DNA of 47,729 bases from Klebsormidium nitens (GCA_000708835.1 DF236958.1:379938-427666), one strand, 5' to 3'; positions 13,969-47,729 are shown, counted from the stretch's first letter. Notes: generated by a model from the sequence alone, not told the origin. Program-made: numbers and translations.

Positions 13969-15401
13969 GAGGCTCAGCGAGCCTAGCCATTTTGCCAGTC
14001 TAACTACTAGTTAATTGTGTGTTTGAAACCGGCCCAGCAGTGGCTTGGTGCGGAGAGCTTTGCTGAGAACCCCGAGGGAGCTGCCATTTTTGCAACGTAG
14101 TTGAGGGCAGCTGTTCTCGGGTACGGTTAGAGCGCTTGTACAAGCAGGACTTCGTACGCGTTGAGACAGCAAATGTAAAGAGTGGTCTCTGCGCCTGAGG
14201 AAGTTTCGGCTAGATTGAAGGTGTCCCTGATGCCGCAATTTCCCCTCGGTTTTAGGGACAGTTTGTGCATTTTGCAGAATATCTGATTTCGTTTCTAGAG
14301 TTCAGCGCTTTCGAGCATGTCAAGCCTAGCTTGAGACAGACATCAGCTTTGGGCCCACTAAGTGAGACGTGGGTTCCAGCGGGACCTGAGAGTTTAGACC
14401 AGACGGACCTGCGCACTTTTAGTAAGCAAAGAAACCAGGTAGCTGCCAGTTTTGCTAATCGAGGGCAGCGGCTCCTGAAGAGAGTGCGTTGACAAAAGTA
14501 TTGAATTCGGAGTTTACATCGTTGTCTTTTCTTCAGCGGCTCACCTAGCCAACATCTTTTTGATCGATTTGATCCGGCAGGGGCGAAGCTGAAATGCAAG
14601 CGAAAATAATCAGTATGGCCTCCTATTTATGTGAAGCATGCAGATGTTGCAATTGATTTGAAGGGCCCGAGTGACTGCAGGCCCCCATACAAAGCAATCA
14701 TTGTGCTATAACCCAATCAGCCAGACTGTAATGGCGTATAGTTCGAGGATCACGTACGTAGACTAGTCGATTTGGATTTGAGTCAAGTTTGTGGAAAGAA
14801 GCATGCAGACATGGCGGCCTCCTCTAGATTATGGCCATGACTCATGTGCGCATGCATTCCCCATCCTCCTGTATAAGATTCACTCAACGGTATACGAGTC
14901 TGATGACAGCAGACAATAAATGTCGGCAACCAATTGCTATAGAGCATTTCAATTTGTATGCAATCGGACAATGGGCCTCGACTACCGCCATAGTGTGCAT
15001 GAGCAAATTAGGTATGCGCATATTGCAACCCTAGAGTATACAAGCAGCGCCCACGTCCTAAAATGTTGCAGCAACATGTGGCCGCAAACGCGACATGACA
15101 GAGTGACTGCCAGTGCAGACGGCATCGTGTATCTTGCATTGGAGACTCCTCGCCGCGTATAATGTTTGTACCGGGAATGATGACCACCCGAAGACTAAAA
15201 GGATATCACTGATGATTGGTGACAAGGTGCGGGCTGCAACGGCCGACAAGCTTATGCAGTAGCAGTGCTTGAATCTAGATTCGTGCATAACTTCCACATC
15301 TATTTGACAGCCGAGTTGCTTAATCAACATTCAAACCTCAACGCGCATCAATATGCCCGCAATCCAGCAAAGAGCTCTTATGATTCGCGAAGGTGTTTCT
15401 G

Positions 15402-20800: not shown

Positions 20801-23800
20801 ATGGCGGCCACTGGCGCCGCTCTGGTGGCCCCCACATATGCTGGGCCTTTGTGCTTTTTGCCCAGCAAGCTGACATCAGCCAAGGAGGTCTTGTGTGGCA
20901 GCCCATTGCATCATCGGGGTTTTGCGGCGTTGGTTAAGAAAGCGGTGGGAAACGAATGTCGGAAGTCTAGTTTTCAGCCAGCGCCAGTGGCGTCCGCCGA
21001 CGTGGAAACACGAGCAGCTGAGGGGGAGGCTGCCAGTTCCAGCTCAAGCGGCTCTGCCAATGCCAATGTCATGAAGAGGTTCAAGACGAGGGAGGTGTGG
21101 CGGAAAGACCCCGCCAAGGTCACCTACCTGGATTCGCAGTACACCAGGTTTGCGTTCATCAACGAGGTGCGCTTCAGCACGGACCTGAACGCCGTGTTTG
21201 CCAAGTACGGGAACTTGGACTTGCGGGAGATTGTGCACATTCTGTACCGGCTCCAGGAGCGGCGGGAGGGGCGTGCGGCGCTGAAACTGATCGAGTTTCT
21301 TGAGAGCAGTCCAGTGTACTCGCAGCAGCTCGACGAGGCGACCTACAGGGCCTGCCTGGCAGCCATTTCAAACTATCCGCAAATGTTGGCCAAGGCGACC
21401 AAGCTGTTTGAGGCCGCAAAAAAGAAGGGCGTTGTCAGGATGACTGAGACGTACAACATGTACCTGGCTCTTGTCAGCAAGCGGGGGGCAGTGGACGTGA
21501 TGGAGGACGTGTTGAAGCAGATTGACGCGGTGAGAGTGGCCGCAAGCTGACCAACCTTAGCTTCCGATTCTATTGTTGGCATTACTATATTACGATGCTG
21601 GTGGTGGCATTCCGTATGTTAATTTCCTACTATATTGTCTGCCGTTCTTCATTTGAAAGCTTGGATTCGCTCGCTGGACTGTCTTATCTATTGCTGCCAC
21701 CACATCAAGATGGATCATCTAATCACTTACTCTAAGCTGGAGAGAATGCTGGTTGCAAGTCGCTGGTGGTCCACCATTACCACTGCGCAAACAGCAAAGG
21801 ACCAAGTTGTGATTGCCGTGCAGTCGTTATTTTTGATTCTGCGAGTTTTGAAAGCTGCCTGGACCTGCAAAGCTCTGCAGTTGCCCGCTTGGCTAAAGCA
21901 GAGGAGTCCTATGCCAGTGTCAGTGATTGCTTGATTGAAGCTGATTCTCAGCTTCAGTCAAGCCTTTTCAGGTACCGCTGAAGCGGGTCGCTGTGTGTGG
22001 AACGGTTGACTGCTCCCGTAGCAGCCACTGTCGTCAGAGACTCGCATGCATCAGACCTGAAGTGAATTCCACGTCAACCAGCGTGGAAGAGAAATTGTAA
22101 ATGCAATTTCTCAGTCAGCATGTCAAAATCTTGAAGCAGTAATGTCGGCCCAAGGCTGTACCTGGACCGTTTGGCAACAGGCTGCGCTCATGTTTCTATA
22201 CCTCTGCGGCCGGATTGCACATGCGGCACAACTATTTCCAATTCTAGTTCAGCTTTGACTTGACCTTCACATCAATTATTTGCCCTCGTTTCTGCAGGCT
22301 GGTTTGAAGCGCACCGTCGAAACCTGGAACTACGTGATCCAGGGGTATGGCAAGAAGCGCGACCTCGATCGCGCGGTTGCGGCCTTCACAGAGCTGCAGG
22401 CTGCGCGGCTGAAGCCTACAGCAGAAACGTACCGCGTGTTGATAGAGGCGTTCTCGAGCGCGGGCCGGACAGAAGACGGGGAGAGGATGGTTCGGGAGTC
22501 TGGGATCCAGCTTACTGAGGTTCAGTATAACGTGAGTAACTGTGAAGTCTGCTGGGCTTGGTCTTGGCAAGGAAACTTGGAGGTTGTGGTCTCCGCAACA
22601 TTGTGCAGGGCAAGGGGACCCTATTACTTCAAACAAATGGCGCACCCCCCACGTATTTGGGGGGTCGAATTGGTCGAGAAATGCGTTGGAGCTGTTTGAT
22701 GCTCTCTTCTTTGGCATTCACTCTAGTGTTCCCTTGGAAACACTTTATTGGAGTTTGTGGCCGACGGCCAGCCGAGTCAAGATTTGGTGGGAAAAGGTCA
22801 TACTTAATACATAAACTTCCACATGCAGCCTCTCAATGTGACAAGGCACGCTACGCAATCAGTGCCAGTTGGTTGCACTGCCGATGCCTATTACAAGCTT
22901 GATGACCTTCCTCGCTCTTAGCAAGACAAACCCTTTTTTCACCCTTTTTTGTCCGCGGCTGGTTTCCCGTGTTCGTCTATTCAAGCATAGGCTCCATTTA
23001 CAGGCCATCATGGACGGGTATGCCAACGAGAAACGCCCCGAGAAGGTGGGGGAAACTCTGAAGGAGGCGCAGGCGGCAGGGGTTGAGCCAAACAACGACA
23101 CATTCCTCATCTTGCTGAAAACGTTCGCTGGCGTTGGGGATGCAAAGGGGGCCTGGGAGACCTATCGTGCTCTCCGGTCGGCTGGGTAAGCGACTGACGA
23201 GGCTGGGTCGAAGATGCGACAGCAAGGCTTTTGCTTCTTCATTTGTGTTTTGGAAATGTCATCCGGCACTGAAAGTTTTCTTGTTCTGAGGCATCCTACG
23301 CACGTGGTACTCGGTTTGCACGGATTTTGTTCTGAAGGCAGTCTAATTCCTCACCAAGGGCATCAGATCCAGTATACCCCACGTGGCTGCATGGGGGCCT
23401 CGAAGCATGGGCTCTGAATGAACCGTTGCTACCAAATCCCTGTCGTCAAAAGGAAGAGAGTTACCAAAACCGCTGAACACGGGTTTCTATTTTGCTGAGA
23501 TAGATCATGTTTCACAGCGCCCTCCATAACCAATTTCGAGCCCTCTTCCTCTCCTTGCCGTCCACCTGTCTCTTCTGCCTGCCCCCCACATTCCGGGTCA
23601 CCTCCAGATGCGCAAGTCTTTCTTGGACTAGCTAGTTAGCTGGATCTGGCCAACTATTTCGGTAAACCCCACAGAGTTCCATTGCACCTGCTCATCCGAT
23701 CTCGTCGAACCTCATCCTCGGAGCACCTTCCGCTTTAGCCCTCCCAGAGGCTTCTTCGCTCACTCTTCCTCCACCGATCCAGGCACCCCCCGAGCGGATA

Positions 23801-26800
23801 TGCATTCCAGCTGCTAGCTAGTGCACGGAGAAAGGACAAACGCCTGGCGGGGGTGCGCGTGCGGCACGTGGTAGAGCTGCTTGAAACGATTGGCGAGAGC
23901 CGGATCCGCGTGAAGGAGGTGATGGAGCGGCGCACGTGGTCCGTCAAGTGGGTGCTGCCCGAGGTCAAGGGGATCCTGCGCGCACTGGCCAAGGACAAGA
24001 AAGACGACCTTGCGGAAGAGGTGGGCACGGCAGCAGTCCGACAGGCTTGAGTGTGGATCTTAAAGCCCTTTTCTGTGTGTCGTGGCGTCTGGACGGGATG
24101 CGTAACTTTGAGGAAAGGATACCGTCCCACTCATGAAAGGCGTAGATACCTGTGAAGTTTGAGTTGCAGAAGTACCGCTTTGAATGTTAGTAAAGATTCG
24201 ATGTACTTCTTTCTATTTCCGCTCTTGCATTGCGATCTTGAGGCAAAACTGAGCAGCCTATGCGCATGGGTGGAAAGAGTTTCAAGAATGGCAGACTCCT
24301 TGTGCAGAGGCCTCAGGATGGACTTTGTATGTCCTCCCAGAAAGTTCAGGTTTTGCTTCGAGTTTTCACCATGTGGCACAGACGGGTGTAAACCGAACCC
24401 TTAAAAGCCATGTCCTGTAAGATAAGTAGGAATATCAACGAACACCTGAGCCTCCCTAGAGTTTCTGGCTGCGCTGCAAACTGCACGCCGCTCCTCCAAA
24501 GTTCCGTCCTAAATAAGTTTCGCAGTTGGTGGAGCAGTGTTACCCGCGATTGGCGGAAGAAAACGTGCTGATAGCAATGAGCATTTGAACCTTGCAAGAT
24601 TCGGTGCAAATCGTATGCCTTCAAAACCCCGCTTGCATACGCTTTGCAGTTGGTTGAGTGGTGTTTTTCGCGGCCCGCGGAGGAAAGGATGCTGCCGGAC
24701 GAGGAGGCGCTGGCCGTTCTGATCCAGGCGAAGGGCGCGGCTGGCCACGTGGACGCAGCGTGGCAGGTGTACAACATGATAGGAAAGGGCCGCGCCAAGC
24801 ACATCACGCCCACCAAGCGCGCGTTTGGCTCGCTCGTGCAGGCCTATGTGGCGTGAGTGACCTTCCATTTCTATATCATGGCTCTTTCTGGCTGTGCGCT
24901 CGTCGATAGGTTTGAAGATGTCCGTTCGTGCAGAATTTCGGTCATTTGCGGATGGCAGTAAGTGGTTAGAAAGGTTACTTCGATTGTGGTAGGATGGAGA
25001 GTTGGAGAGAGGGAACAAGGAACCTCGTCAAGTATTTCCAGACAAGCGCCCAGTCTGTTTCCAGTCGATGCAGGGCATTCAGAGCAAATAAGTTCGCTCC
25101 TGTCCGAAACAGGCTTATTGTGTTGTTGTTTGGTGGACTTTTATAGGTTGAGCTGCTCCAGAAGTGGGTGCGGTCCATTCTTGGCGAACTTTGAATTGGA
25201 CCCCTCCGGAAAGTTGCTTATAGTTGGCCCCCGTCGTACTGCCTGCAGGGCTGGCGATGTGGCTCGGGCGGAAATTATTCTGGAGGAGAGCGAAAAGCGG
25301 TCCGGGAACTGGCCCCAGGCCGACACCTACTCGTACTTTGCGCTTATGCGGCACTATGCAGAGAAGGGGGACGCACAGAAGGTCCAGGCGGTGAGCGAGC
25401 GCACGTTTTGCAGGATATGCTTTGGTCGCCTTTCGTCTTGGTCCATAGTGCGAAAGTGTTTCCGGGCTTCAGAGCTTGACCTGCGGTCGTACTGGGCGTC
25501 TCGTTTTGCATTTCGTTCCCTGAGGATTCGGAAAGCGTCCTTTTTAATATCCAGCACCCATATCAGTCTTGAGCGTCGGTGTCTACCAAAGTACCTCGGA
25601 GTGAAACTTCGCCTCTTGGCACCTTCCCTTTTCCGCCCATAAGTGGCTGCACTCCTCTCTTTGCCAACTGATCTCGCCAACCATAAAATATTCTTTTTTC
25701 CTCGGCACTGATTTTACATTATTGTTCTGCATCTTGCTTAATCAACGCTTCCGCTCGCTGATCCTGCCTTTTCTTGACGCACTCCCTCTCCGTCCGCAGT
25801 TGTTCGACCGTGCCCTCGCTGCGGAGGTGGCTCCCAACGCGAGCACGTTCATGATGTTGCTGATGGCGTATGACGTGGCGGGGCAGCGCGACAAGGCGCT
25901 CGAGGTTTACGACGCGCAGGGGACCAGCCACCTGGGGACGCTCACCGAGGGGGACGTGCGCAAGCTGACCGACTTCCTGCAGAAGCACGGCAGGCCGGAC
26001 GAGGCCAAGAACGTGCAAGATGTGAGTGCTCGCAGCCTGTGGGTGTCCCGGGAAATCTGTCTGAGGTAGCTTCGTACTAACTCCGAGCACTTTAAATCTT
26101 TCGAGAGCTTGAGGAACTTGCCGCTCATTGCAGCCCACTTGAGCGTCTTTTCTGTCAGTGACTGATGCGAGGAGGGAGGGAGGTCCACCTGATTGTGTTC
26201 GCCGGCGTTTCGAAACGCGTGCGCTCTGCTATGGTAGGACCGTTTTGTCCTTGCCTCGTGATTTGTCCTTGCCTCGTGAAGGCCTGCTCTAGATGACTCC
26301 TGGTGACAGCGGAAATCCAACATATGTAGTGAAGTTGCAGTTGGTCTGGTTTGATTTTGTGAACCGCATAGCCGCATAATTCGAGGGGCCTTTCGAGGGG
26401 AAAGGACGATGCTCTTGATCGGTCTCAAGACGAGCGGATTTGCATGCCTGTGCGGCAATACCGGGCGACCTCACCATTCCTACGTCGGCTGACTCACTTT
26501 ACATCTTCCCGTCGCAGACGTTCAAGAAGAAGCCCGAAACCTCGGTTCCCGCAAAAGCAGCAACTCCTGCACGCGCCATTATTCCCCCTGCGCTCGAAAC
26601 GGCAGAGCCCGATGAAAAGCCCAAGGTGATGGCCGATCTGCTGACGACCAACCTGCGCGGGGCGGAGCGGAGAAAGCTATCAGATGCTCTGATTAGCGGG
26701 GGGTACCTGCAATCGCAGGAGGACTATTTGCGGCTGGCGGAGGCGATCATGGATAAGAAGCTGAAGCAGAGCGGGGCTAGGGTGCTTGAGCTTCTGCCGT

Positions 26801-28501
26801 ACATGCGGAAACAAGGGTGGGCGCCGCAGCTCTTTGGGTGCTTGCTGACGTTCTGAACCTCGCGTTTTTTCGAAAAGGGCGCTGTGATGGAAGTTTTGTC
26901 CCTTAAGCTTGCCGTGATAGGATTCTGGCCAGAAGAGTAGTTTGACTTCTTCTGTTTCGCAGCTTTGATTTGGGGTTTGGTGCTTGCATCTCGACAAGAC
27001 CTTAGTGACAGGGTTGGATGGCCGCACAATCACCTTGCGATCCTGGGCTTCTTGCTGGCTTCTTGCGGGGCTGCGTCTTGCTTGGAAACGCTTGCGTGTA
27101 GTTTTCAAGTAAGGCGCCTTTAGACCGACAAGCCCCGATATACCGACACTGGTAAATATCATCCAACGAATCTTTCTCTAGTCCCTGCCCTCGCTGTTGT
27201 GTGACCTTTGCCCCTCTGACGTCTTCCCCCAGATTCGACATTCCGCATGACACGTGGACGCACCTGGTGCGGCGGGCGGACCGGGCAATGCAAGCGGCGT
27301 CCATGTTCTATGCCGCCAAGCGAGAGGCGGGGCCGGATTGGGACGACACGGTAGGGTCAAGGCTTGCGCGCACTGCAAAATCCAACTAGTGTGCTGACTT
27401 CGACTTATGTCCGGTTACTGGCGACTGACCCTCGTTTGCCGTGAGCCTGATGTTGACGAGGGTTTAGGAAGGCAGGTTGGGGGGGGTTTTGGCTGACCGT
27501 GCCGGATTAGAAGTGTCTTTTTCGGGGTTGTTTCAAGAGGACTTCTCTTATGATCGATGTCTCCACTTGATTCGTTGATTGTTTTTGTCGCTTTTTCACT
27601 GGCAGGCAAGACCTCACCATACAGCAGTACCAGCCTACATTACTAATGTGTGTAGGGTAGCATTGCCACAGCAGGCTCTCGGGCGCATCCGTTTGGCCGA
27701 TCTTAGTCTCCTGTTTTGTCAGCATCGAAGGAGTGCATTGCCAGAGCGTTGCACGAAGACTGCCTTGTCGTAATAATCTATTTTCAGGCAATCTGTCATT
27801 AGTGTGGATTGCCAGCCTCTTCGCCTGAAGGAAAGATGTTTCCTCTGTATGCGCACATTGCTTGACGCCCTTTTCGTTTTTCGTGCGGATGCTCAGGAGG
27901 CAGCCCAGGCCCTAGCCGAGGCTCGGCGGGTGGCCGGAAAACCGCGGTGGGTGAACCACGTGGTCTGGTGTCTGACGTCACTCGGGCTCTCTATCGAAGA
28001 AACCTTGAACCCCCGGCTATGGCCCGACGAATTCCGAGGTACGCCGCTGCTCTGGACGGAGTCCTCTTTGTTGGCTGGGCCGTCGAGCATCGGCTCACTG
28101 GCCTTATCCACTACGTCTTGTAAAGTATAACCCCTTGAAGTACTTTGACGGCGATTCCGAGGGCTTGGAAACTATTGATGTCGACCGTTAACAGAAATGG
28201 GCCCTGTGTTGAATCTGCAGACTGGAAACACGTGTGCTGTCCGTTTGATACTGGAAACTGAGATACGTTTTCTGCCTTTGCAGTTTCGGACGTGCCCGGC
28301 AGTGTTAGTACTCTACAACAATCAGGAAGACCGGAACAGGCGGCGGATCTTGAAGCACGGATAAGAGAAATAGCGCCGGAAACAGTGTTCGAGCGAAGCG
28401 GGGACCATACCAAAGGTGCCCCAAAAGAAAACGAAGTAGACCCAAAAGAAAGCGAAGTAAAAACGGTCGAAGGGGTTGCCAACATTCCATCGGATGTTTA
28501 A
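20801..28501 (+). CDS. Large P-class PPR protein (PPR-2), probably organelle-targeted; 11 exons
   Basis: Exons 20801-21529, 22298-22531, 23004-23185, 23783-24020, 24650-24852, 25249-25390, 25800-26021, 26518-26816, 27233-27350, 27897-28038, 28284-28501 join in frame. The Ala/Ser-rich N-terminus resembles a transit peptide. PPR motifs include TVETWNYVIQGYGKKRDLDRAVAAFTELQAARLKP, NNDTFLILLKTFAGVGDAKGAWETYRALRSAG and DTYSYFALMRHYAEKGD. Confidence 0.88.
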
Positions 28502-30379: not shown

Positions 30380-30392
30380 GCCTATAAAACGG
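30380..30392 (+). promoter_or_regulatory. Candidate TATA box of gene A
   Basis: cctataaaac about 140 bp upstream of ATG 30526. Confidence 0.4.
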
Positions 30393-30525: not shown

Positions 30526-32450
30526 ATGGCGCTCAAGGCGCAAGTTGCCGTCACGGGGCTTCTGATGGTCCTGGTGCTGGCGAATCAGGTAAGCGCCGCC
30601 ATTGCCTTCAAAATCTTACAGATCCGTACATGTGAACTGATTTGTCCTGAGAATTTTCAGATCGAAAACGTTTCAACCAGGTGATGGTGTCGTGACTGTC
30701 AAGAAATAGAAGACACGTTGGGGAACTCGGTTGTCAGAAGCTTGTCAGGATATGGTCGCTTAGGTCAAAAGGGAGCTTTTGCACTTTTTTTGGATGCCCA
30801 GCAGCCAATAGCAAAGCTACGAATGGGGTCCTCCAAAGCTTAAAGCTGCCAAAACGATCTTGTCGATTAAGGGTACCCTTTTCGCCGTTCCTCCGGCAGC
30901 TTTGTATTTTCAAAGTCGTCTGCGTTCAAAAAACGAGAAATAAAACAGGAGATCGTTGCTTGACGTCAACGAGATGTATATAATCCTTTTCCTCACGTTT
31001 CGTTTTTGCAGCGCAGATTGACAAATTGTTCTCCCGTCTGCAGGCATCCGCATCGTGGATCAGCGAAGCGCTGTTCGCTTCAAACGGCTCGCACGAGATC
31101 GCCCACGCTTCCAACCAGCGCAGCCTGCTGCAAGCTCGTACGTTCAAGCACATGGTTTTTCCATCAGCAGTTGCAAGATCTTTGTTTTCCTTGTCGCCTC
31201 TTCGCAATTTCAGAACCTCGATTCCTAGACTCTCTCTCTTCGCGTGCAAGCCTGCGGAGTCAGCGAAATTCAGTTGGAGCGAACTCTCCTGAGCCGTTTC
31301 CTCATGGGCGAGCGGCAAGCAGGCGCTCTACTTGCGGATAGCTTTGACGAATATCGGAGCATGCTACGTCGCTTCTTCGGCAGATATTCAACCGCGCTTC
31401 CCTTAGTACACAGGCCTGTCAAACGCGGGCAATCTTATGCGGCTGCGTTTTTCACCTGACTCCGCTGTTTGCGCGCGGCTCACCTTCCGTGTCTCTTCTG
31501 TTTTTGTGCAGCCCAAACCTTCGTCTGCCCCACCTTTTTCGGCCTCTGCCCCTTCTTCGGGCTGGGCCAATTTGGCAACACGATCCCCCTCTGCTGCCCC
31601 TCCTTCATCGCCTGCCCCGGGACGCTCATCGCCATTCTGCTCAACTGCGAGGCGGCCCTGCCCGTTACCCCGGTGCCAACCCCGCCGGTGACTAGTCCCC
31701 CGGTCACGACACCCCCTGTGACCACGCCCCCTGAGACGACTCCCCCAATCACAANNNNNNNNNNNNNNNNNNNNNNNNNNNNNNNNNNNNNNNNNNNNNN
31801 NNNNNNNNNNNNNNNNNNNNNNNNNNNNNNNNNNNNNNNNNNNNNNNNNNNNNNNNNNNNNNNNNNNNNNNNNNNNNNNNNNNNNNNNNNNNNNNNNNNN
31901 NNNNNNNNNNNNNNNNNNNNNNNNNNNNNNNNNNNNNNNNNNNNNNNNNNNNNNNNNNNNNNNNNNNNNNNNNNNNNNNNNNNNNNNNNNNNNNNNNNNN
32001 NNNNNNNNNNNNNNNNNNNNNNNNNNNNNNNNNNNNNNNNNNNNNNNNNNNNNNNNNNNNNNNNNNNNNNNNNNNNNNNNNNNNNNNNNNNNNNNNNNNN
32101 NNNNNNNNNNNNNNNNNNNNNNNNNNNNNNNNNNNNNNNNNNNNNNNNNNNNNNNNNNNNNNNNNNNNNNNNNNNNNNNNNNNNNNNNNNNNNNNNNNNN
32201 NNNNNNNNNNNNNNNNNNNNNNNNNNNNNNNNNNACGACCCCCCCAGTCACCACGAAACCAGTGACTACTCCCCCGGTGACTGCTCCCCCCGTCACAACA
32301 CCCCCCGTGACTACTCCCCCGGTGACTACTCCCCCGGTTACCACTCCCCCGGTCCCAGAGACCCCCTCTCCCACGCCTTCCGGTTGTCCTCCGTGCCCGT
32401 GTCTTTCTCCCACACCCACGCCGTTTACACCGTTGCCTTCAAAGGCTTGA
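30526..32450 (+). CDS. Gene A: secreted chimeric Pro/Thr-rich (HRGP/PRP-like) protein with an N-terminal 6-Cys module; 3 exons, gap in repeats
   Basis: Exon 1, 30526-30588: MALKAQVAVTGLLMVLVLANQ (signal peptide). Exon 2, 31044-31137: ASASWISEALFASNGSHEIAHASNQRSLLQA. Exon 3, 31512-32450: FVCPTFFGLCPFFGLGQFGNTIPLCCPSFIACPGTLIAILLNC, then (PPVTT)n, ending PSGCPPCPCLSPTPTPFTPLPSKA*. Exon sizes and phases match paralog B. Confidence 0.85.
31670..32355 (+). repeat. Coding 15-bp minisatellite encoding (P-P-V-T-T/A/S)n, spanning gap 31755-32234
   Basis: Degenerate ccc ccg gtg act act units on both sides of the N run. Confidence 0.9.
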
Positions 32451-33473
32451 TAGTAAAGTGTACATAGGGGCGTCTGTAATGTCAAAGCTTAGCTCGAAGG
32501 AAACCCTCACTGTATTCCAACCGGGGTAATGTGCAGAAGACTTTCAATATAAGTCGTGCTTTCAACTTTTGTGTAAAGACGCGTTTCAAACATTCGACAG
32601 CCATCTACCATGAGCGGTACAAAGATAGTAGAGGAGAGTTTGTTGATTAGAGGACCGTTCATGCATCAGAAATCTGTGCAGTAGAAGTGAAGAAAAGACA
32701 CTTCTGTGCCGGTCAGCCCTTGACATAAGAATAATAATCGGACTACCCATCTTTCTAAGTCTTGATCAAAGGAGCAGTGACTGTATGTAGAATCGACAAC
32801 TGGGCTTCCAAACGTTACCAAGAAATCCGTAGCACTTTGCATCGATGCTTAGCCTAGTAGCTAATGCTATTGCACAAAATTGTACAAGCTATTATAATAC
32901 AGTCTTTTGACAGGCCACATGCTTGGCCTGTCGATCTGGTAGCTGTACATTCAGATCATCAATATGGCAATCACCGTCCAAGTCATGCCCGTCCAATATA
33001 CGTGACTCGCTCACATTCCCCTCCTAGGTCAACTTGAACATGGTCGCGCAGGCCTATGTTGCACATTCCCATGGTGATCCGGTTGCAAATTTTGAAATCC
33101 CCGATCGAGTTCCTGGAGATTGATGCCTCCATCATGTATGTAAGTTCCTTACAAGTGTGTGGTATGTGGCCCGATTCAGCCATGAATGACCAAATCAGGT
33201 AGGCGGTAGCAGCTCGAGCTTGATAACTACGAGTGGCAAGCTTCCGACAATTCGAGTAGATGGATCATTATGGTTCCTCTCGCTGAATCCAGACCTCGGA
33301 ACAGCCTTTCTCGGCACGGTTATGCTGGAAATGGGACGAAACTTCCCAGCCTGGCATGTACACGCCATGTATGCAACCGAATGTACCTAAGATTCATGTA
33401 ATGTTGGAAGCGTTGCAGTGGCCGGGCCATCTCATGATTTCTGGAAGGTGCCGAAGCATAGACGCAGACCCAA

Positions 33474-36147
<2,674 letters not shown>

Positions 36148-36890
36148 CTCCCTCGGTCTTGGGCAATCACCCCTATGCTTCAAGCTCCTTCATAAAATTG
36201 AAGAGCACTGGCGAACACTTTCTTCCAGATTGTAGCAGATTCGCAGAGCTTGGGGCCACTTCGTGTCGCGGTTTCGCAGCTTGGCCCAGCGCTCGCACCT
36301 GGCTCGCACGGGCTACGAGCATAAAGTAACTTGCAGGACAGCCTATACAAGGCAATGTTTGCCACCCTTCTAAGCTGCACGAGAGGGCAGTCACAGTGTG
36401 TAGGCCGTGTGCACCGCCATCGCAGCTGCATTGCCAACTGGCAATGCTAGCAAGCTGGCCACCCGCTGGCCATGAATCTGATGTGGAAATGATCAGCTTC
36501 TCCACACTGGACTGGTCGGATCGATCCAGATCGATCACCAAGAATTACCGATTCATTAGAAAGTTCATGTTGTGCTACAGACTTTAGAATACGGCAATCG
36601 CGCTTTGCATCCTTGCGCCAATTCTGTGCGACCTCTGAACAAGTAAAAACGCCCTCTTCTAAATCGCAACTTGGCTCAAGCTCAGGATTGGAACCAGGCC
36701 CAGGGCCATCGCCTGCAGTCTGCAGTGGTGCTCGAGAGAGGACAGATACCGGTATGACCTACACACGGACCTACAAAAGCGCCAGCATTCTACTGTTTGC
36801 AGCTCATGCCTCCTGAGGCTCTGGCACCTGAACAGAGAGTTCTTGTGAAAGGCGTCAATTTCTGAGCAGCTTCCCGTGACTGCCGTGAGG

Positions 36891-39800
36891 ATGGAAGCGA
36901 CGTGCCTGAGAAACGTATCCCGGGGCTCTGCAGCAGCGGCTTCTTTGATTGGCCCAAGAGAGGCCCAGAATCTTGCTACTACAGGCAATCTGCAGGTTGC
37001 AAACCACAGCCGACCAGATAGCCTGCAGAGGAGGAAGCAAGCTGCCTCAGCTGCTGCAGCACTTTCAGCATTGCCTGATAAAAGACAGGGGTACTGTCCT
37101 GCTTGCAAAAGCTTGAAAGTAGCAGGCTTCAAGTTGCTGGTGGTGCGGAGAAATGAAAGAGCGTTGTCCACAGCTGCTGCCTCCCAGGGTGGGGAATCTG
37201 ACAGACAAGCAATAGGAGCAGGTCATGGTGATAAGGTGTCAACAAGCAGTGTGAGGGAGGAGAATGAAGGTGGCGCAGTTGCACCCCAGCTTGAGCCCCT
37301 TCCTCTCAACGGAGTTGACCAACGTGCAAGAACTCTTCTTACTGGCGCTCCTAGGATCATATCAAGCATAGATGAGCTGATCTTGCTGCAAAAAGAGGCT
37401 GCCGGGGGGGCTGCTGCTGAAGTGCGGTCTTTGGAACAAACATCTGCCTTAGAAGAAACCTCCCCTGCTGAAAGAAGGGGGAATGCAGACGCTTCAGTTA
37501 GCAGCCAGCCACGAAGACAAGCAAACAAGACATGGATAAGAGACTCTACAGGGACGATGCGTCGAGCTGTCCAGCCAGCCAAACCCTCCACTTCTCAAGG
37601 TAGCCCCAGCAAGCCGCTCTCCCCCAGCAGGATGAAGCTTCCCCGACACGGAGCCCCTCGAGCTGCCGCGGTCATGCGAATCCTGTATGAGGCACGGGAC
37701 TTGACGACTGATGGAGTTCTTGACCAGTTGGCGGAAGCGGTGCAAAGGGCAGAGCTGAACATGGTGAGCAGATTACCTTTCACTCACACAAGTGAATCAG
37801 CCCGCTTGCCATTCTTGTGGAAAGCAATGAGAGCACTTCGACGATGTTCATGTGTCCCAGACTTTAAGGTTCCTTACTGCCACGATGCTATCTCGCCTTG
37901 TTGCTCGTTGTGGAAGAGCAGAGTACAGATGCGTACCAACACCATCAATGGCCTTTGAGGCAATTCACGCTCGATGCGCAGATCATAAAGGATCTTGGCG
38001 TCAGGGGCCGGACAAACAAGGCATTCGAGGTGAAATTTTTTGTCTTGCTGGGACTCTGCTGTTTTCTCTCAGAAATAGAGGACCGGAGTGACCTTGTGAA
38101 GTAACGAGAAATCTTTTCAGGGTCTAGGAGGAGAGATGGCTCCATCATCTTGGATCACCACTGGGAGACCTTTGTGTGCTGTGAGCAACTTGCTTGCTCT
38201 CCTCTTACAACTCAGCAGAGGCCAACACGAACAAATCCTGACGTACTCAAACAACTCTCATGCAACGCAGCAAGTCACCAGGCGCCACTTAGTTTCGAAG
38301 CATTTCTTGCATTGCCCAAGAATGCGTTGATCCCTCAGCAAGCCAAGCTCTCATTGTGCACAAAGTGCAGGTCTACCACTGGATGCTTCAGCAAGGCAAC
38401 GAGCGGCGTGCGCCAGACGAGATCACGTTCAACAGCATTATCACCGTCCTTAGCAAACACGGGCAGGTGGAGAAGGCCCAGCACGTCTTTGAGATGATGG
38501 ACATGGTGCGTGCCTGCCGACACCCTACTGTGCTTTTGAAATTTGGACGTCTGTGCTTCATGCTCGTGTTTCGTTGACTACCTTGTACCGTCCGTTTTGT
38601 GGTCGAGCATGTTCAGCGGAGGACAACGGTGAGGACGTGCTAAAGGAGCAAGAAGGCCTTAGGAGCGTACTTCAAGTTGTCGAGGTGATACCTTCTGACC
38701 ACTGGTTGAGTCTGTGTTGCAAAGCAGAGTCCGGAGTCTGGTCGATCGACTCAGCTTGAGTATTGAAAACGCTTTTGTTATCGTCCTCAGGTTGACGGGA
38801 TGAGAAAGGAGGTTAATTACGTGTTTTAGTCTAGTGCACAGCACGTTCAATCTCGTCTTCAAGTTCGACGTCAGTATCTTGCCTCGCAGGTGGCTTGCCG
38901 ACGGAACGTGTTCCACTACAACGCTCTCCTCAGCGGCTATGCGAAACTGGGCCTTGCCACAGACGCCCTGGCCCTATTTGAGCGGATGAAAGTGGAGGGC
39001 ATCGACCCCGACGGCAGGTGAGAGTACGAGTTCGAAAGACTAGCCGCCGTCTTATGAGAACCCTGACTATATTGCCATCAACAAGCAGATTCGAGCTTCA
39101 AGTTTCGAGTGCTACTCGGCCCCCTGAGGACCCCGTCTATGCTACAGCAGTTTATGCTTGGCACCTGGTCGCAGCCGTTGGTCCTGTCAGCCGTAGAAAC
39201 AGGACGGTCCAGCAAACCACCGATGCTCGCATGTTTCACGAGCATTATTCTGCCTCCTGGGACAGGTGAGTCCAACAAGCGCGCAACTTACCTGACTTCG
39301 CGTGCAGTTCGTACAATATCCTGATCAACGCGTGCGGCCGAGGGAAGCAGCTGACGCGGGCCCTAGCGCTCTTTGAGGAGATGGTGGGCAAGGGACTGCA
39401 AGCCACGCACATCACGTACACCTCGCTGGTTGGCGCGTGCGGGAGGGATAACAGGTGGGGCTGCTGCATCTGCTTAATCTGTGTGTATAGAAAAGCATCC
39501 TCAAAGGTCATAGACTGAATTTGCCAAAGCAAGGGTCACGCCAACCGGTTACTGAACTCATTCAGATGTTGGGATTGTAAACAATACCCGTCTACGGCTT
39601 GAGTCACCACTTTCCGTGCGAGGGGCGTGTGGCTGAACTTAGTCACCTTGAACGAGGCTGCAATTACTTTCGATTCCATTGCCAATGAGCCCGTTGCTTT
39701 TTGCGGAACAGATATGTATAAGGAAGTGGATTCACTCCCGTGTTTCCTCGGTGAAGAGCGAGTCGAAAGCTCTAAGGCAGACCATACTGAATTGAAGACA

Positions 39801-40938
39801 TCTCCTTGTGCTCGTGAGTTGTCCGTTTCGAGAACTATCTGAAGTTGCCGCAAAGCTTTTCGAGATCTGGCAGATTGCGTCGCTTTGATAAGTTACTGCT
39901 CCCGGCATGCCTTTGCTACGGTGAACTGTGCAGCCCTTTAAGATTGCTCCTCTGGATCGAACCTCAGATCCGCGACAGATGGATTCCTTTCTGGGGATTC
40001 GAGGGCCCATTTTTGCAGCTTTGCGTTGAGATTCTTTGCTTTGTGGTCATAGAGAGGAAGGGGCAAAAGCATACGTGAGGCGGTTACTACTACCGATTAA
40101 GCTTTGGGGGCGGGTCTGAGACCGCAAAGTTCAGATCTACTGTAACCAGAGATATCTCCAATCGACCTGAGATTTTGCAAACCGCTTTTGCGTGGCGCAG
40201 GCCCTTCCAGGCGCTGCGTATCTTCCAAGAGGCCATTTCCGGCGGAGTTCCGCCGGACCAGCCCATGTTCAACGCCCTCCTAGACGCGCTGGGGCGAGGC
40301 AGCTTGTTCGACGAGATGGCCGATGTGCGCAGCCAAATGGCGGAACGGGGCTTCGCACCGTCGCTGGTGAGTTGACGAGCTACTTGGGCTGCCTTTAGGA
40401 TCCGCAAGTGCCTCTATTCTTCTACCGCTCAAGTCCATTCCAAAAGGTGTGTAATCGTAACGGATTACACACCCTCACGTCAAACACGGTCGTCATGCAG
40501 CCTTTACGGGTTGAGCTTTTGTCCAGGGTTCTTCCCTTGCGACTTCAAACGCATTGAACTGCTGTCTTGATGTGTGCCGGATCTTGGACGTGCCTCAGTC
40601 GCAACGAGTGGGGGAGAAGCCGTCAGGTGATTGTGGGTTGTGTTCTCAAACAGTCGTTGGCGTGGATGCGAATGGGGATCCTTTGCGTGATCCTTCTCGG
40701 CGTGACAGCCTACTTGCGGACAACAAATTGTATCTTGATCGAGATGCACACGATCTGTTTGCTTCACGTGCTCTTGACTTCGAGCAGCCCATGACAAGGG
40801 TGCCGTCCTGTGCAGGATGCTTATCGGTCCATGTTGGCAAGCTATAAACAAGGGGAGCGATACCTCGAGGCCAAAGCAGTCCTCGACGAGATGCGGAAGG
40901 CGGGATACGATCCAGGTCCCGTAAGACTGCCGATATAG
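36891..40938 (+). CDS. P-class PPR protein (PPR-3), probably organelle-targeted; 7 exons
   Basis: Exons 36891-37763, 37982-38029, 38371-38505, 38890-39017, 39308-39454, 40201-40366, 40816-40938 join in frame. PPR motifs include DEITFNSIITVLSKHGQVEKAQHVFEMM, NVFHYNALLSGYAKLGLATDALALFERMKVEGIDPD, SYNILINACGRGKQLTRALALFEEMVGKG and QPMFNALLDALGRG. An unused gtaaga near 40921 makes the 3' end slightly uncertain. Confidence 0.88.
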
Positions 40939-42016
40939 ACGCAACGCTAAAGAGAACGGTCGATTAAGTTACCTCTGGCCCTTTGGCCCTTTGTCTAATT
41001 GCAAGCTAAAGAAGGTCATCATACAGCTACAAACCACTTCATCGTGTTTGAAGGTATTTAAGAAGCTTAAAGATCTGGTAAACGTGCTCGTCTGGAGACC
41101 ACGCAGTTTGTGCTGCGGCACTCTAAGCGACAGATAATGGACGCCCTCATCAATGACGTTTGGCGTGGACGAAACACATGCAATGCGTAACGTGATCAAG
41201 CTTACTCATCCCTGATCGGTCGAACCAACTTCGGTTTGCATGAGCCTATGCATCCGTGTACCAGTGCAGGATATGGCATGATGCACTGAATATAGACAAA
41301 TTTGAGGCAGCATACATGCCAGCTACACTACAGATACAGCGGCTGGGAACGTGCGCATGAGGCAGGCATGCCGCGGCGAGCTGGCTAGCTAGCGACGGGC
41401 TCAGCACCGTCACTGTATTTGGCCTGCGTGCACGCGTGCATAGCTAACCATACGTGTCATGGTCAAATGCACCCGTATAGGCTGTCCCAAAACCGAAACC
41501 TGATTTCCAAATGTCGCTATATACTATAAGACTCAAAGATGTGGCTTATTACCGTACCGTACGTGCATACGGTATGTCCGCGGCATGAGTTCCCGGTAAT
41601 CAGATCATTCCGAAGATAATGCAAGCAAGCCGGACGTGCATCAGATTTGGTAACCGAACTTGCTGTCAATGGCCGAAATTGAACGAGCAGGCTCGTAAAA
41701 CTCGAGCCATGGATAGGCGGCTGGCCGGGCACACTAAAACATGCTATAAGGAAATGATCGAGATTACAGGCAGTCGAAGTACAGCCCCTACAAATGTTCC
41801 AAGCGTCGGTTGATGCTACAATTGTCTGGGCAGAATGTTTGTTACTCCATGCTAAAGCAATATTTCATGGCGTATTTTACAGATAGCCCCGCAGCGCTTG
41901 CCGCTGTTCAGCCACGTCAGGCTCGACCAGCCTCTTTCGTCAATGGAAACGTATGGAACACTTTATCCACCAGCAAGCCTCCAAGCCCATTATCGTACAG
42001 CTTCCACCCCTCAAAC

Positions 42017-44774
42017 TTAACGGGACTTGGAACCTGGGCTTTTGCCGCTTGGGGACTTGGGTGGGGGGGGCGGAGGACTCTTGCCTTTCGGGGCTGGGGG
42101 AAATTTGGGTGGCGGGGGGGGAGGAAACTTTGCTTTTGGGGGCGGGGGGAATTTGGGTTGGGGGGGGGGAGGACCCTTCTTTTTTGGCGGCGGGGGTGGG
42201 GGGGGGATCTTGGGGATTGGGGCCGGCTTCTTGGGGGGGCGCCGGGGAGGGAATCTTCTTGGGGGGGTGTCGGGGAGGAAGTCTTCTTGGGGGGTGTCGG
42301 GGAGGGAGTCTTCTTGGGGGGTGTCNNNNNNNNNNNNNNNNNNNNNNNNNNNNNNNNNNNNNNNNNNNNNNNNNNNNNNNNNNNNNNNNNNNNNNNNNNN
42401 NNNNNNNNNNNNNNNNNNNNNNNNNNNNNNNNNNNNNNNNNNNNNNNNNNNNNNNNNNNNNNNNNNNNNNNNNNNNNNNNNNNNGGGGAGGGAGTCTTTG
42501 TGAGGGGGGGAACAGGCGTAGGGATGAGGGGAGGGGCGGGGGGAAGGATTGGGGCGGGCGTGGCACGTGTGGCCTGCTCGCAGTTCAGGAGGACCGGAAG
42601 GAGGAACATCGAGCAGTTGATCACCTTTGCGCAGCAGATCGGGACCGTGTTGCCGAACTGGTTCAGGCCGGTGAAGTTGCACAGCTGCGCGGGCTGGGGC
42701 GGCTCATTCTTGAACAAGACGATGTCGGTGCACTCGTACGGGGCTGGGGGGGGCGACCGGTGGGGGGTCAGAAAGGTGGACCCGCGAGAGGTTGATGAGT
42801 ATTTGAACTTCGTGCTAAACATGTACACTATCTCATCTCGCCCTCGCGGCTAGTGTACCGAGAGACATCCGTGGAAAGCGAGCAGAGAGCGACGAGGGCG
42901 CGGCAACTGCGCTCTGCTAGAAAGTAAGCACGGTGCCAGAAAGTCCACACTCGTAGTCGCAAAATGATGGCGTGCTGACCTAGAGACCTGGTCTCAAACC
43001 GCTTACCGGTCGTGCCTAAGAGCGAGAAATATGAGAGCGACATGGTCAGCAATGTCTCAAGCATTTCCACATGGTCGAGCAGCATCTTGAGTCAGCCAAA
43101 TTAATGAAACTCTGAAAAAGCTGCCCAGTCTCGTTGACGAGAGGCCGCTGACGGCTCACCTTCGGGGGTTGGCGCAGGCACGGCGGTGAGGGGAGGAGTG
43201 GGTGACGGGGTCAGGGTGGGGGCAGGAGTGACCGGAGCGACAGTTGGGGTGACCGGGGGGGGTTTGGAGGGGGTGGGAGTAGGGGTTGGAGCGGGAGTGG
43301 GAGCTTTGGAAGGGGTTGGGGTGGGAGTCGCCGGGGGAGTCGTGATCGGAGGAGCAGTCACCGAAGGAGCGGTCACGGGGGGAGCAGTGACCGGAGGGGT
43401 AGTGGACGTGGGGGGTAGTCGACGTGGGGGGTCGTGGAGTTGGGGGAGTAGGTCGACCGGGAGGGGTGGTCGACCGGGGGAGTAGGTCGACGGGAGGCGT
43501 GGTGGACCGGGGGGTCNNNNNNNNNNNNNNNNNNNNCGGACCGGGGAGGCGAGTGGACGTGGGCGGAGTAGTGACGGGGGGCGCGGTGACCGGGGGGATC
43601 GTGACCGGGGGGGTCGTGATCGGGGGGGCAGTCACCGGGGGAGTGGTGACGGGAGGAATGGTGACGGGGGGAGCAGTGATTGGAGGAGTGGTGACCGGGG
43701 GTGCAGTCACGGGCGGTGTGGGCACCCCGGGGACGGCCGTGGCCGCCGCGCAGTTGAGCAGAATGGCGATGAGCGTCGTGGGGCAGCCGATGAAGGCGGG
43801 GCAGCAGAGCGGGATCGTGTTGCCGAATTGGCCCAGCCCGAAGAAGGGGCAGAGGCCGAAGGCGACGCCGGGGCAGACGAAGGTTCCGGCTGCACGAAAC
43901 GGTACGTAAACGGAAATTGAGCTGTGCGCACTGAAGACAATAAGTGAAGAAGTAAAGTAATTGGTGGGATTTGTGGCGAAAAAGAGATGCTGAGTCTGGG
44001 CGCGGAAGAAGGCTAGATTGCTTGCTTTCGTTGTTGAGCTACGTGTAACCAGTGCCCACCAGTACCTGTCTTCTAACTTTAGTCGGCGTGTGGTTGCCCG
44101 TAAATTGAGACGGTGGCTCAACGGAGTCTCCGGCTTCGCTTAACTACTTCTGCAGACTCGACAGAGAGGATAAAGAAAATTTTGGGAACCTCGGATTCCA
44201 AAGAGAAGGCCTAAGGCGACAAAAAAAACGAAAACATATGTAGGTGCTAACGAGTTGAGTATGCGGGTGAAAGTACCTGCTTGCAACAGGCTGCGCTGAG
44301 TCAATGCGTGACCGATCTCGTGCGAGCTGTTGGAAGCAAACAGCGCCTGGCTGATTGTAGCCGCAAAAGCCTGCACACAGGACAGGAAAACACTCAAACA
44401 CAGCGGATAGGAAATGTGCGCCCAGATGAGTGAACAAAGCTCGATTGACAAGTGTTTCTTCTCTGCAAGAAATCGGCATATTTCATTCGTGGCTCTTGCG
44501 AAGGGCTACTGGGCAGCCATATGTCAACGTGCAAAGATCCGGTTTAAGCGAGCCAGTTCTTCTTTTCGACGTTCTCAAAAACGGCGAAGGGAGTCCTCAA
44601 ATCACCTCCTAACGAGTACAAACGATTCTGGCAAAGGAAGGCACTCCAAGCATCTGACTCTATGCAGAATCGATGCGAAGCAAGTCTCCAGGCCGGCTAC
44701 AAGGATGTTACCTGATTCGCCAGCGAGAGGAGCAGCAGCACACCCAGTAAGGCTACTCGGTCCTCGAGCGCCAT
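42017..44774 (-). CDS. Gene B: paralog of gene A with two 6-Cys modules, PPVTT repeats and a Lys/Pro-rich extensin-like tail; 4 exons, two gaps
   Basis: Exon 1, 44774-44712: MALEDRVALLGVLLLLSLANQ. Exon 2, 44370-44277: AFAATISQALFASNSSHEIGHALTQRSLLQA. Exon 3, 43889-43160: FVCPGVAFGLCPFFGLGQFGNTIPLCCPAFIGCPTTLIAILLNC plus PPVTT and TP repeats. Exon 4, 42743-42017: YECTDIVLFKNEPPQPAQLCNFTGLNQFGNTVPICCAKVINCSMFLLPVLLNC plus TPSPTPPKK repeats and a PPPPK-rich tail. Apparent frameshifts next to the gaps make the exact C-terminus uncertain. Confidence 0.8.
42250..42500 (-). repeat. Coding 27-bp tandem repeat (TPSPTPPKK), spanning gap 42326-42484
   Basis: Units such as cttcttggggggtgtcggggagggagt repeat up to the N run. 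Confidence 0.8.
43340..43715 (-). repeat. Coding 15-bp minisatellite (PPVTT/PPITA), spanning gap 43517-43536
   Basis: ggggg(a/c)gt(g/c)gtgac-type units on the + strand that translate to PPVTT variants on the - strand. Confidence 0.85.
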
Positions 44775-47459
44775 CTTAAAGCGCCAGCTTTGAAGCGAAG
44801 AACGGATAGCTGCCGCAAGTTGGACGGGGCGGCAGGAAGTTCGCAGAGAAACGGATGCTCAGAATGCAGTGAAAGGCTTGGAGGAAGTGATACGCCGCCT
44901 TGTTCAAGTCGTGGCTGCATTCGTAAGAGTGTGCTCCCTCTGTACAGGGATTGAAGGAAGTTGAAAGCGCGAGCAAGACTAGCAGGTCTTCGATCCAGCT
45001 TGATAAGCCTGCTGAGCTGCATCTTCTTTCAATAGTCATGCGGGCAACAGCGAGGTGCCTGTAAGACATGGAAGGATTACCTACTCAGTCACTTGACGAT
45101 AGCTTGCAATGCATCAGGTTTTACTGCTCCTCGAGTGCCTCGCTTCAGGTGAATGAGTAGAGCCCATGCTGAAATGCGGGCGTGTCTAGCCATCCAACGT
45201 TGAGAAAAGGGTGAATTGGGCACTCGCTCTTCAGTTCAGGACTTTTTGTCGTCTTTATCACGGCCTCGGAAAATTGTCTGCAGCTTGCTCGGACAGCTCG
45301 CGCATCCGGAATAATGGACCGCTGCAGAGTAGCCATCATTAGTCCACGGTGCGCAAGTTCCTAGAAGCTGCTAGAGCAACACGTCCTTAGTTTCAACTCA
45401 GTTTGTCTTCGTAAAGGTCCTGTCGCAATTTGCATAAGGTTTGGCAGCAAGGCGGCGGGACACGGCTTTACCTAAGCGCCACCGTGTTGCGATGATGGAT
45501 CATTGCATGGTTGCGTGCTTGACAACTGTCGCAAAAGGAGCGGCGAAATAGTCCAAAGCACACCAGAGCGGAGAAAGATGCTCGAGAGAATGGGATGTGC
45601 CTCCTGTGTCGAGAAATCCTCTTTCAAGCCGCTTTTGCATTCCAAGGCGGCGGCTTGGCAAGCGAAGATCTGGTCTGCATAGACAAGCGGCGGGCAGCAT
45701 AGGGGGGCACCCAAGCTCAGCCGTTCTATCTCCAACGTTGTTCAGCGCATTGCTTCAAAGCACAAGAGCTCACGACTCGGTTTTCGGCGCGGCTGCGAGT
45801 CCAAAGCTTTGACCGGCCCAATGGTTCGTTCAACTCGAGAGACACCGAGAACGTTAGGATCCGTCTCTCTAAGTCTCTCCATTTCTCGGCGTCTGCGGCG
45901 AAGACCAAACAAACCGGGTCAGGCTGGGGCGCGGTCAATGTCTAATTAAGGTCCGCGTTTCACTCGCTGCTTCAGCAGGATTCAATGCTCGTTATCCTGG
46001 AGCCTTTTTTAGAACCTCGAAACCAAGCACACGCCAAGTAGCCTATCTTTTGGACCAATCTTTTAAAGCTTTACCGGTTTTTCAGATGGGCGCGAAAGCG
46101 TAGGAAGCAACTTACGTCAGCCCGTGAGACCGCTCGCACCACTAGGTTGGGCGCCGGGAAAGACACCACGAAATGCTTCCCGCCACACAAGAATCGCTGT
46201 GCAACTCAAGAGCCCGGCTCGTGTGTGATGTTTAGACCCAGAAGGCGGCCATCGAGAGCCTCGGAACGAAGTAACGCTCTCTATAATGTCCTAGATCACA
46301 ACCATGCATCGGTGCTTACGGATTTTGTCCGGAAGTCAAGGAGAAAAAGCTCCCTCTGAGCTACTGGGACAGACAAATCCAGAATCTTGCTCACAATCTG
46401 TTTGCTGAGGTGGGCGGCCCCCGTCTCCAGAGTTGCTGTCAAGCTAGTACTCTTATATAGATAGGCCATCAGTGGTCTGAGGGCTGAAATTGATGTGCCC
46501 AGTCAGACGAGAACTTGACATGGACGTAGCGATCTAGAAACTTGCCCTCTGAACTCCTCTGACTCTCGAAGGTGACCGGTGTGATTTTCTTTGCCGGTTT
46601 TCTAGCTTCACAGTCAAAAGCGGGCCGCATCAACGGCTTCGTATAAGGACTTTGAGGGTCTCGGCAGCCAAAGTCGATGGCCGTCAGATCCGGATACGCG
46701 TCGGAAGCAGCGCCGTTTCGCGATTATGTCCGTGCATCTGATTGGTGGTTCAGAAGCGCTCCTTATACTCCCCCGTTTTGCCCGGCGGCATAATCTAATA
46801 TGCCCATGCAAACTTGAAAGCAGGCAATCGCAACGTTATGTTTCCAAGGGATCGCAACGTACATTTGACTTCGGTCAAACAAGTAGAGTCCATGCATCCA
46901 TTTGGGGTCAATACATCCATCATATCACTTCGATGGCCCACAACAACCAACGAATGTCTGAAGTGCTGAGATCTGTTGACAAAGTTATTGAATTCCAAAT
47001 GACAAGGAAGGTCTGACCTTACACCAGGCTTGGGTTGGATAGAAAACATGGATACGAAGAGGGACGGATTTCTGAGCAATGCGGACAAACGCACCTATAT
47101 GGAGCGAAAAACATCCGATAAGAGCACTTTTTGGTCCATAGAAATTGTTCCTGCAGAAAATTTCTACATTGTCCTTGCCGGCCCCGTAAAGAAACTAGTT
47201 ATCCGCACTTGGCCGTTTTGTCTGAGAACGCGAAGAATCTCGAACGCGACGGGATCATAAATTCTGCATGATGACTGAGTCTGCCTATCTGGAAGGTTGG
47301 AATTGAACGACGCCGGTCCATTCTGCCTACACGTTAGAAGACTCCAAAATCCGAGTCCTTCCACAGTCTGCTTGTTCGATTGTTCCCTTTGTCAACTTTC
47401 TGACGATCGGAGGCTCTCTTTTACCATTTTGCTGAGAGAGAAGAGGGGCTTTCAAACGG

Positions 47460-47729
47460 CTAGTAGTACCCGCCGGTTTTCTTCGGAGGAGGGGAGCCGG
47501 TCTTCTTCGGCTTCGGGGGAGGGGGGCCGGTCTTCTTCGGGGATGGGGAGGGGGGTTTCTTGGTCGGTGTGGGCGCGGGCGTCTTTTTGGTGGGGCTGGG
47601 AGATGGAGTCGGGGTGGGAGTGACCGGGGGAGGTTTGGAGGGGGTGGGAGAAGGAGTTGGAGCGGGAGTGGGAGGTTTGGAAGGCGTTGGGGTGGGAGTC
47701 GCGGGGGGAGTCGTGACCGGGGAGTGGTC
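47460..47729 (-). CDS. Gene C (partial): 3' end of a third family member, truncated by the window edge
   Basis: Stop-free frame ...PVTTPPATPTPTPSKPPTPAPTPSPTPSKPPPVTPTPTPSPSPTKKTPAPTPTKKPPSPSPKKTGPPPPKPKKTGSPPPKKTGGYY* with TAG at 47460-47462. It is absent from the ORF track because it has no start in the window. 47620-47720 differs from gene B 43249-43349 at about 7 of 101 positions by my count. Confidence 0.8.
   Translation of the reverse strand, partial: DHSPVTTPPATPTPTPSKPPTPAPTPSPTPSKPPPVTPTPTPSPSPTKKTPAPTPTKKPPSPSPKKTGPPPPKPKKTGSPPPKKTGGYY

Follow-up and report, generated by a model that had tools for sequence, protein, structure and literature searches.

A gene cluster for secreted proline-rich chimeric proteins carrying an undescribed six-cysteine module in Klebsormidium nitens

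Scaffold DF236958.1 of Klebsormidium nitens carries five neighboring genes (A to E) that together encode six copies of a cysteine-rich module within about 27 kb. The stretch of this scaffold analyzed here (the window; 47,729 nucleotides) holds genes A and B, with a methyltransferase gene and a PPR gene between them, and the tail of gene C; the cluster is wider than the window, as the head of C and the divergent paralogues D and E lie beyond its end. The strict cysteine pattern of the module occurred three times in the window (A, B1, and B2) and in none of 100 shuffled windows. Gene A corresponds to KFL_000090650 (NCBI model GAQ78219.1) and gene B to KFL_000090690 (GAQ78223.1); both are listed as “hypothetical proteins,” each a singleton at 90% clustering, and neither gene identifier was named in the literature searched. 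Four database gene models within the cluster were corrected by our analysis.

Gene A is preceded, 143 nt upstream of its start, by a TATA-like box (TATAAA; 30381-30388, +) that is a consensus match only. Its exon 1 (63 nt; 30526-30588, +) encodes the n and h regions of a signal peptide, and exon 2 (94 nt; 31044-31137, +) encodes an AxA signal cleavage site and a propeptide with an N-glycan sequon and an RSLLQ site. Exon 3 (31512-32450, +) encodes module A (31526-31648, +; C-x6-C-x14-CC-x5-C-x10-C, GRAVY 1.29, zero charged residues), a PPVTT rod of 15-nt period (31649-32353, +) with an assembly gap inside it (31755-32234), and a tail ending at the stop codon (32354-32450, +) with an SGCPPCP motif that was also found in a second genome. 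At this motif (32377-32405, +), a third cysteine is added in K. nitens, giving CPPCPC, which is a possible oligomerization hinge.

Gene B lies on the opposite strand and begins with a 63-nt signal peptide exon (exon 1; 44774-44712, -) and a 94-nt exon encoding a propeptide, sequon, and RSLLQ site (exon 2; 44370-44277, -). Exon 3 (43889-43160, -; phase-1 donor at 43159) encodes module B1 (43875-43750, -; C-x7-C-x14-CC-x5-C-x10-C, GRAVY 1.34) and a rod of PPVT repeats followed by a TP/AP linker (43749-43160, -), which contains a gap with error-prone flanks (43517-43536). A fourth, unannotated exon with a phase-1 start (42743-42017, -) carries a second module, B2 (42732-42580, -; C-x16-C-x14-CC-x5-C-x10-C, GRAVY 0.6, two sequons), and a basic Lys/Pro-rich tail (42579-42017, -; gap at 42326-42484) that ends in KSPGSKSR and a stop codon, as does the tail of its ortholog (P0004). 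One DNA contig (42518-43199) extends from the end of exon 3 across the intron and through module B2. The 119-amino-acid database model after the exon 3 gap (43516-43156, -) appears to be in the wrong frame, judging by its end position.

A first-pass annotation of this DNA had proposed that A and B share exon sizes and phases and that both encode a signal peptide, propeptide, cysteine module, and Pro/Thr repeats. Both proposals held: exons 1 and 2 measure 63 and 94 nt in either gene and are 73 to 74% identical, with near-random introns of common phases (0 and 1), the heads of the two NCBI models agree with our exon calls, and all four parts were recovered from the sequence of each gene (signal peptides were judged by hydropathy and the AxA pattern). 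The third paralogue tail that it had placed at the window end was likewise confirmed as gene C (47729-47460, -), which matches B at 91% identity across 112 nt and consists of a TP/SP linker and PPPK/KKT basic repeats ending in GGYY and a stop codon. A DNA contig (43831-47547) links the head of B with the tail of C. On the public scaffold (L001 4491-6018), the head of C has the same 63- and 94-nt exons, a module with 86% identity, and at least 30 PPVT units. Opposite gene C, the database places a gene of 312 amino acids (L001 5294-7776; window 46999 to past its end, +), which is probably an antisense mis-model, C itself being unannotated on its own strand.

In each of the outer paralogues, D (KFL_000090710) and E, a signal exon is followed by a propeptide with RxLLQ and a module that has diverged. 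Against a profile of the A, B, and C modules, E scored 11.9 bits, above all 1000 cysteine-fixed shuffles (maximum, 11.6). The score of D was weak, being reached by 40 of 1000 such shuffles, so its membership in the family rests mostly on architecture and position. Gene E starts at an ATG of its own (L004 13809) and has exons of 63 and 64 nt; a 155-amino-acid database model (L004 11689-14948, +) seems to merge the tail of D with it.

No contig spanned any of the three gaps in the cluster (31755-32234, 43517-43536, and 42326-42484). The gap in gene A, entered as 480 N, breaks the reading frame (its length must be 2 mod 3), and 480 is an estimate only; one DNA contig, running leftwards from 42099, reaches about 105 nt into it from the right, and the aligned parts of this stretch carry the same PPVT repeat. 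At the flanks of gap 43517-43536, the repeat period is noisy, 16 to 17 instead of 15, and the tail of B contains two frame shifts, both in C-runs. The K. nitens genome was assembled with Newbler from 454 and Illumina reads (PMC4052687), and the ortholog of this tail is one open frame; for these reasons, the frame shifts are probably assembly errors, as are the noisy gap flanks. Which head belongs to which tail is given solely by scaffolding, since A and B are near-repeats in inverted orientation. The two genes are convergent and flank the methyltransferase and PPR genes (32250-43600), and an inversion of this segment, by recombination or through faulty scaffolding, could swap the tails of A and B.

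As an independent line of evidence, a second, Klebsormidium-like genome (Logan contig L003) showed about 70 to 80% DNA identity to the cluster in the same order: B rod, B2 ortholog, PPR gene, methyltransferase gene, and the tail of A. In this contig, a phase-1 intron lies at the place matching the exon 3/4 junction of B, the B2 ortholog runs through an open Lys/Pro tail to KSPGSKSR, and the PPVT repeats of A pass in frame into SGCPPCP.

Contigs from 17 presumed-RNA runs, which can show presence and not absence, contained no spliced junction of gene B. Sequence words of gene B were next to none in 15 of the 17 runs; in the other two, a small share was found in short, unspliced, intron-containing contigs. 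The cluster genes were not listed in the portions available of the supplements of K. nitens RNA-seq papers. Expression may be conditional. That the cluster consists of silent or decaying repeats with no current role would fit the absence of spliced RNA from these contigs and the frameshifts near gaps, yet we consider it highly improbable: every cysteine, splice site, and tail end is intact and has been kept in the second genome, the frameshifts sit in homopolymers at contig ends, and GC3 of the module codons is 92 to 94%. In the module cores (31541-31648, 43857-43750, and module C on L001), 6 to 12% of same-amino-acid codons differ, versus 13 to 40% in exons 1 and 2; together with the GC3 values, this low divergence suggests that A, B, and C either share a strong codon bias or have undergone gene conversion. 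Also present in presumed-RNA runs was another contig of good coverage (1.7 to 2.0 kb, depth of ~25) whose proline repeats are of the TPT type; it probably represents another K. nitens proline-rich gene outside the cluster.

All five precursors (A to E) carry RxLLQ directly before the module. Since RxxL/RxLx is the motif of the site-1 protease SBT6.1/S1P (PMC13082318), the module is probably the mature N terminus, as read from sequence. Downstream, the rods are built of PPVT(T/A/I) units without PPVxK or tyrosine and have a PAST content of 66 to 84%; of the PPVx(K/T) wall motif named in the first-pass annotation, the threonine form therefore stands and the lysine form does not. Its reading of TP, SP, and AP dipeptides as glycomotifs agrees with our results, as these repeats correspond to the plant hydroxylation glycomodule (PMC11252719). 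Its extensin motif fared poorly: SP3-5 occurs once each in the tails of B and C and not at all in A, and the only tyrosines within rods and tails are the terminal YY of C. The extensin label is weak, repeated SP3-5 and tyrosine cross-linking motifs both being absent. The tails differ by gene: that of A bears CPPCP, which we take to resemble the IgG hinge; those of B and C are basic and Lys/Pro-rich, with the terminal YY added in C. No transmembrane segment or GPI tail was found in the sequence. A membrane anchor was rejected, since the best 19-residue window after the signal peptide (1.93) holds four cysteines and three prolines.

Plant chimeric PRPs and HRGPs include repetitive PRPs with PPVx(K/T) units and chimeric PRP/AGPs such as AGP31. 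The proteins of the cluster share with them the signal peptide, PPV pentapeptides, TP/AP/SP dipeptides, a basic Lys-rich part, and a Cys-rich globular domain; here, however, the domain is an undescribed one placed at the N terminus, the rods are Thr-rich and free of Tyr and Lys, and an RxLLQ propeptide is present. With a signal peptide, a proline-rich glycomotif region (TP/AP/SP and PPVxT), and a non-HRGP domain all found, the earlier description of these proteins as chimeric HRGPs is upheld, and to judge by their architecture, the family very probably consists of secreted chimeric proline-rich wall glycoproteins.

All seven module copies (six from K. nitens and the ortholog P0004) contain six cysteines with one CC, at spacings of 6-16/14-17/0/3-7/10-13. 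In the modules of A, B1, and C, GRAVY is 1.19 to 1.34 (0.97 to 1.15 without Cys), D, E, K, and R are absent, and 16 of the 41 to 42 residues are FILMVWY. By comparison, B2, its ortholog, D, and E have GRAVY values of 0.57 to 0.84, and the modules of B2, D, and E each bear one to three N-glycan sequons. The “very hydrophobic” head of the first-pass annotation is thus apt for A, B1, and C and not for B2, D, and E; with half of the K. nitens modules (three of six) only moderately hydrophobic and sequon-bearing, the amphiphilic character that it attributed to the whole family is limited at most to the A/B1/C subfamily. Positions L11, F14, L17, F20, and I24 stay nonpolar throughout the seven copies, and four of the five fall within a predicted hairpin and its loop or at their edge. 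At F15, V4, and some helix positions, nonpolar residues occur chiefly in the A type, where these extra residues probably face outward.

Database searches placed the module in no named domain, in agreement with the first-pass annotation, which had recognized none. Pfam returned noise and a sub-threshold Extensin_1 match on the rod (E = 1.3e-7, 32 bits; cutoff, 105) and nothing for the module, for which PDB sequences gave no meaningful match, an ESM Atlas feature search no usable match, and metagenome and viral contigs no match. Word-based protein searches over limited length ranges, which for A-type modules excluded about 106 to 132 amino acids, recovered only A, B, and D of K. nitens. An HMM scan run in full over 1.84 billion representatives, with a threshold below which D and E also fell and below which more distant relatives could be missed likewise, retrieved B, the ortholog P0004, and one Marinifilum repeat protein; the last was rejected as a relative because its match is a sum of low scores and lacks the Cys pattern. 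These searches yielded no relative outside the lineage, and on their evidence the module family would be known only from K. nitens and one Klebsormidium-like contig.

Structure prediction with AlphaFold gave a pLDDT of 69 from five sequences and five models of pLDDT 71 to 78 from seven. The best of these (pLDDT 78) has strands at 9-14 and 24-29 and a helix at 38-44, that is, a beta-hairpin followed by a helix, and the best model of the five-sequence run shares these elements. Searches by fold (PDB, VIA-wide, Atlas, and viral) yielded nothing above noise (best Z, 2.4; best TM, 0.52, in Atlas), and no known surfactant protein showed structural likeness to the module above that level. The class II hydrophobin HFBII (PDB 1r2m) was matched at noise level by the weaker pLDDT-69 model only (Z, 2.1; rmsd, 3.2; 39 aligned) and was absent from the matches listed for the better pLDDT-78 model. 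Like class II hydrophobins, the module is small, secreted, disulfide-rich, and nonpolar, with a predicted hairpin then helix; unlike them, it has six cysteines rather than eight, matches none in sequence, and is fused to a long glyco-rod. Hydrophobins have eight cysteines and four disulfides (PMC13621225), and hydrophobin identity was rejected on the six cysteines with one CC and the absence of Pfam and PDB-sequence matches. In the literature searched, “Klebsormidium” and “hydrophobin” occurred together only in work on another topic.

The combination of proline-rich repeats with a hydrophobic Cys domain of C-C-CC order is shared with HyPRPs and nsLTPs (8CM; Hydrophob_seed), and the module could be conceived as an 8CM shrunken by one disulfide pair, making these proteins reversed HyPRPs. 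The LLNC ending of the module, which we take to recall HyPRPs, also speaks for this. The 8CM pattern is C-Xn-C-Xn-CC-Xn-CXC-Xn-C-Xn-C, with four to five helices around a cavity, and the C-C-CC-C-C order of the module equals C-C-CC-CXC-C-C minus the C5-C8 or C6-C8 pair (PMC9832785). Nevertheless, we regard this derivation as very unlikely, since the module is 41 to 51 residues long, about half the 8CM length, lacks CXC, is placed before the repeats rather than after them, is predicted in both runs as two strands and one helix and not four helices, and matches no 8CM protein in Pfam, PDB sequences, or fold; on its six cysteines, missing CXC, and predicted fold, 8CM membership was rejected.

Six cysteines with a central CC are also the mark of inhibitor cystine knot (ICK) peptides, and the module might be an antimicrobial, membrane-active peptide, knottin-like or otherwise, that the rod displays or releases in defense. 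The C-C-CC-C-C order, the signal peptide and propeptide, and the local cluster of genes with diverged copies would be in keeping with this. We judge it improbable, if somewhat less so than descent from an 8CM. Loop 2 (14 to 17) and, in six of seven copies, loop 4 (5 to 7) fall outside the knottin consensus CX3-7CX3-8CX0-7CX1-4CX4-13C (PMC4942781), on which count the ICK assignment was rejected, and a helix is predicted in the last loop, between C5 and C6. Moreover, the module is fused to a rod, is uncharged and thus without cationic residues, and is followed by no obvious release site, and its A, B1, and C copies are near-identical rather than fast-diversifying.

The reading that we favor, tentatively, is that these proteins may be stalks anchored in the wall, each displaying a hydrophobic head toward other heads, lipids of the wall, air, or a solid substrate. 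A site-1-type subtilase would cut at RxLL, leaving the module, treated here as a predicted three-disulfide domain, at the mature N terminus. Hydroxylation and O-glycosylation would then turn the rod into a rigid polyproline-II stalk; as a polyproline-II helix extends about 0.3 nm per residue, such rods would measure tens of nanometers. The C-terminal end would be retained in the wall in a gene-specific manner, through CPPCP interchain disulfides in A, Lys-rich tails in B and C, and the YY of C. The uncharged A/B1/C head, with more nonpolar residues than a 41-residue core likely buries, could stick noncovalently to the surfaces named above, with B2, D, and E being milder, glycosylated versions of it, and the proteins would thereby help build a hydrophobic or adhesive outer layer.

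The main rival to this reading, which we hold to be less probable, is that the head is a specific binding module for a glycan, wall protein, or microbial ligand, carried on a stalk as in chimeric HRGPs, with the conserved F-x-G-L/I-G-x-F loop as binding site and the hydrophobicity of A/B1/C incidental. Consistent with it, loop and core are kept in all seven copies and overall hydrophobicity is not, and the module lies on a phase-1 exon and is duplicated inside gene B. Against it, the module bears no likeness to lectin or carbohydrate-binding families, A/B1/C lack Trp, Tyr, and charged or polar pocket residues, and the HMM scan retrieved no enzyme-fused copies.

A stronger form of the stalk-and-head reading, drawn by analogy, is that the A/B1/C head might be a green-plant-lineage analogue of hydrophobins, a convergent surfactant of undescribed fold that, borne on glycosylated rods, self-assembles into the water-repellent film of Klebsormidium; we consider this doubtful. 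The hydro-repellent surface layer of Klebsormidium to which the first-pass annotation appealed is itself documented: on solid medium, K. nitens makes a surface film of lipid and glycoprotein (PMC4927632), and in liquid, its cultures form a superficial layer (PMC4618304). Klebsormidium has no cutin, and Kondo et al. ascribed the layer to lipids on a glycoprotein framework and proposed amide-linked fatty acids on wall-protein lysines (PMC4927632); neither of the two studies identifies a protein of the film (PMC4927632, PMC4618304). With their uncharged hydrophobic heads, rods predicted to be glycosylated, and Lys-rich tails, the cluster proteins are reasonable, named candidates for this film. 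Were the head a surfactant, it would represent a protein route to surface waterproofing in a land-plant relative and, on the hydrophobin-analogue reading, a protein-based stand-in for the cuticle; were it not, the family would add one more lineage-specific wall-protein domain. In either case, the six-Cys domain is undescribed, and secreted proline-rich chimeras are already a known kind.

Several other features of the window were observed. Three PPR or PPR-like genes are present (15400-17850, -, judged by eye; 20801-28501, +; and 37632-40938, +), as is a Gly/Arg-rich single open reading frame of 532 amino acids without a Pfam match (18723-20321, -). A further open reading frame of 360 amino acids, also without a Pfam match (36876-37958, +), reaches well upstream of the annotated start of the third PPR gene (37632), and its region is kept in the second-genome contig (73.5% over 1261 nt); this PPR gene is probably longer than annotated.
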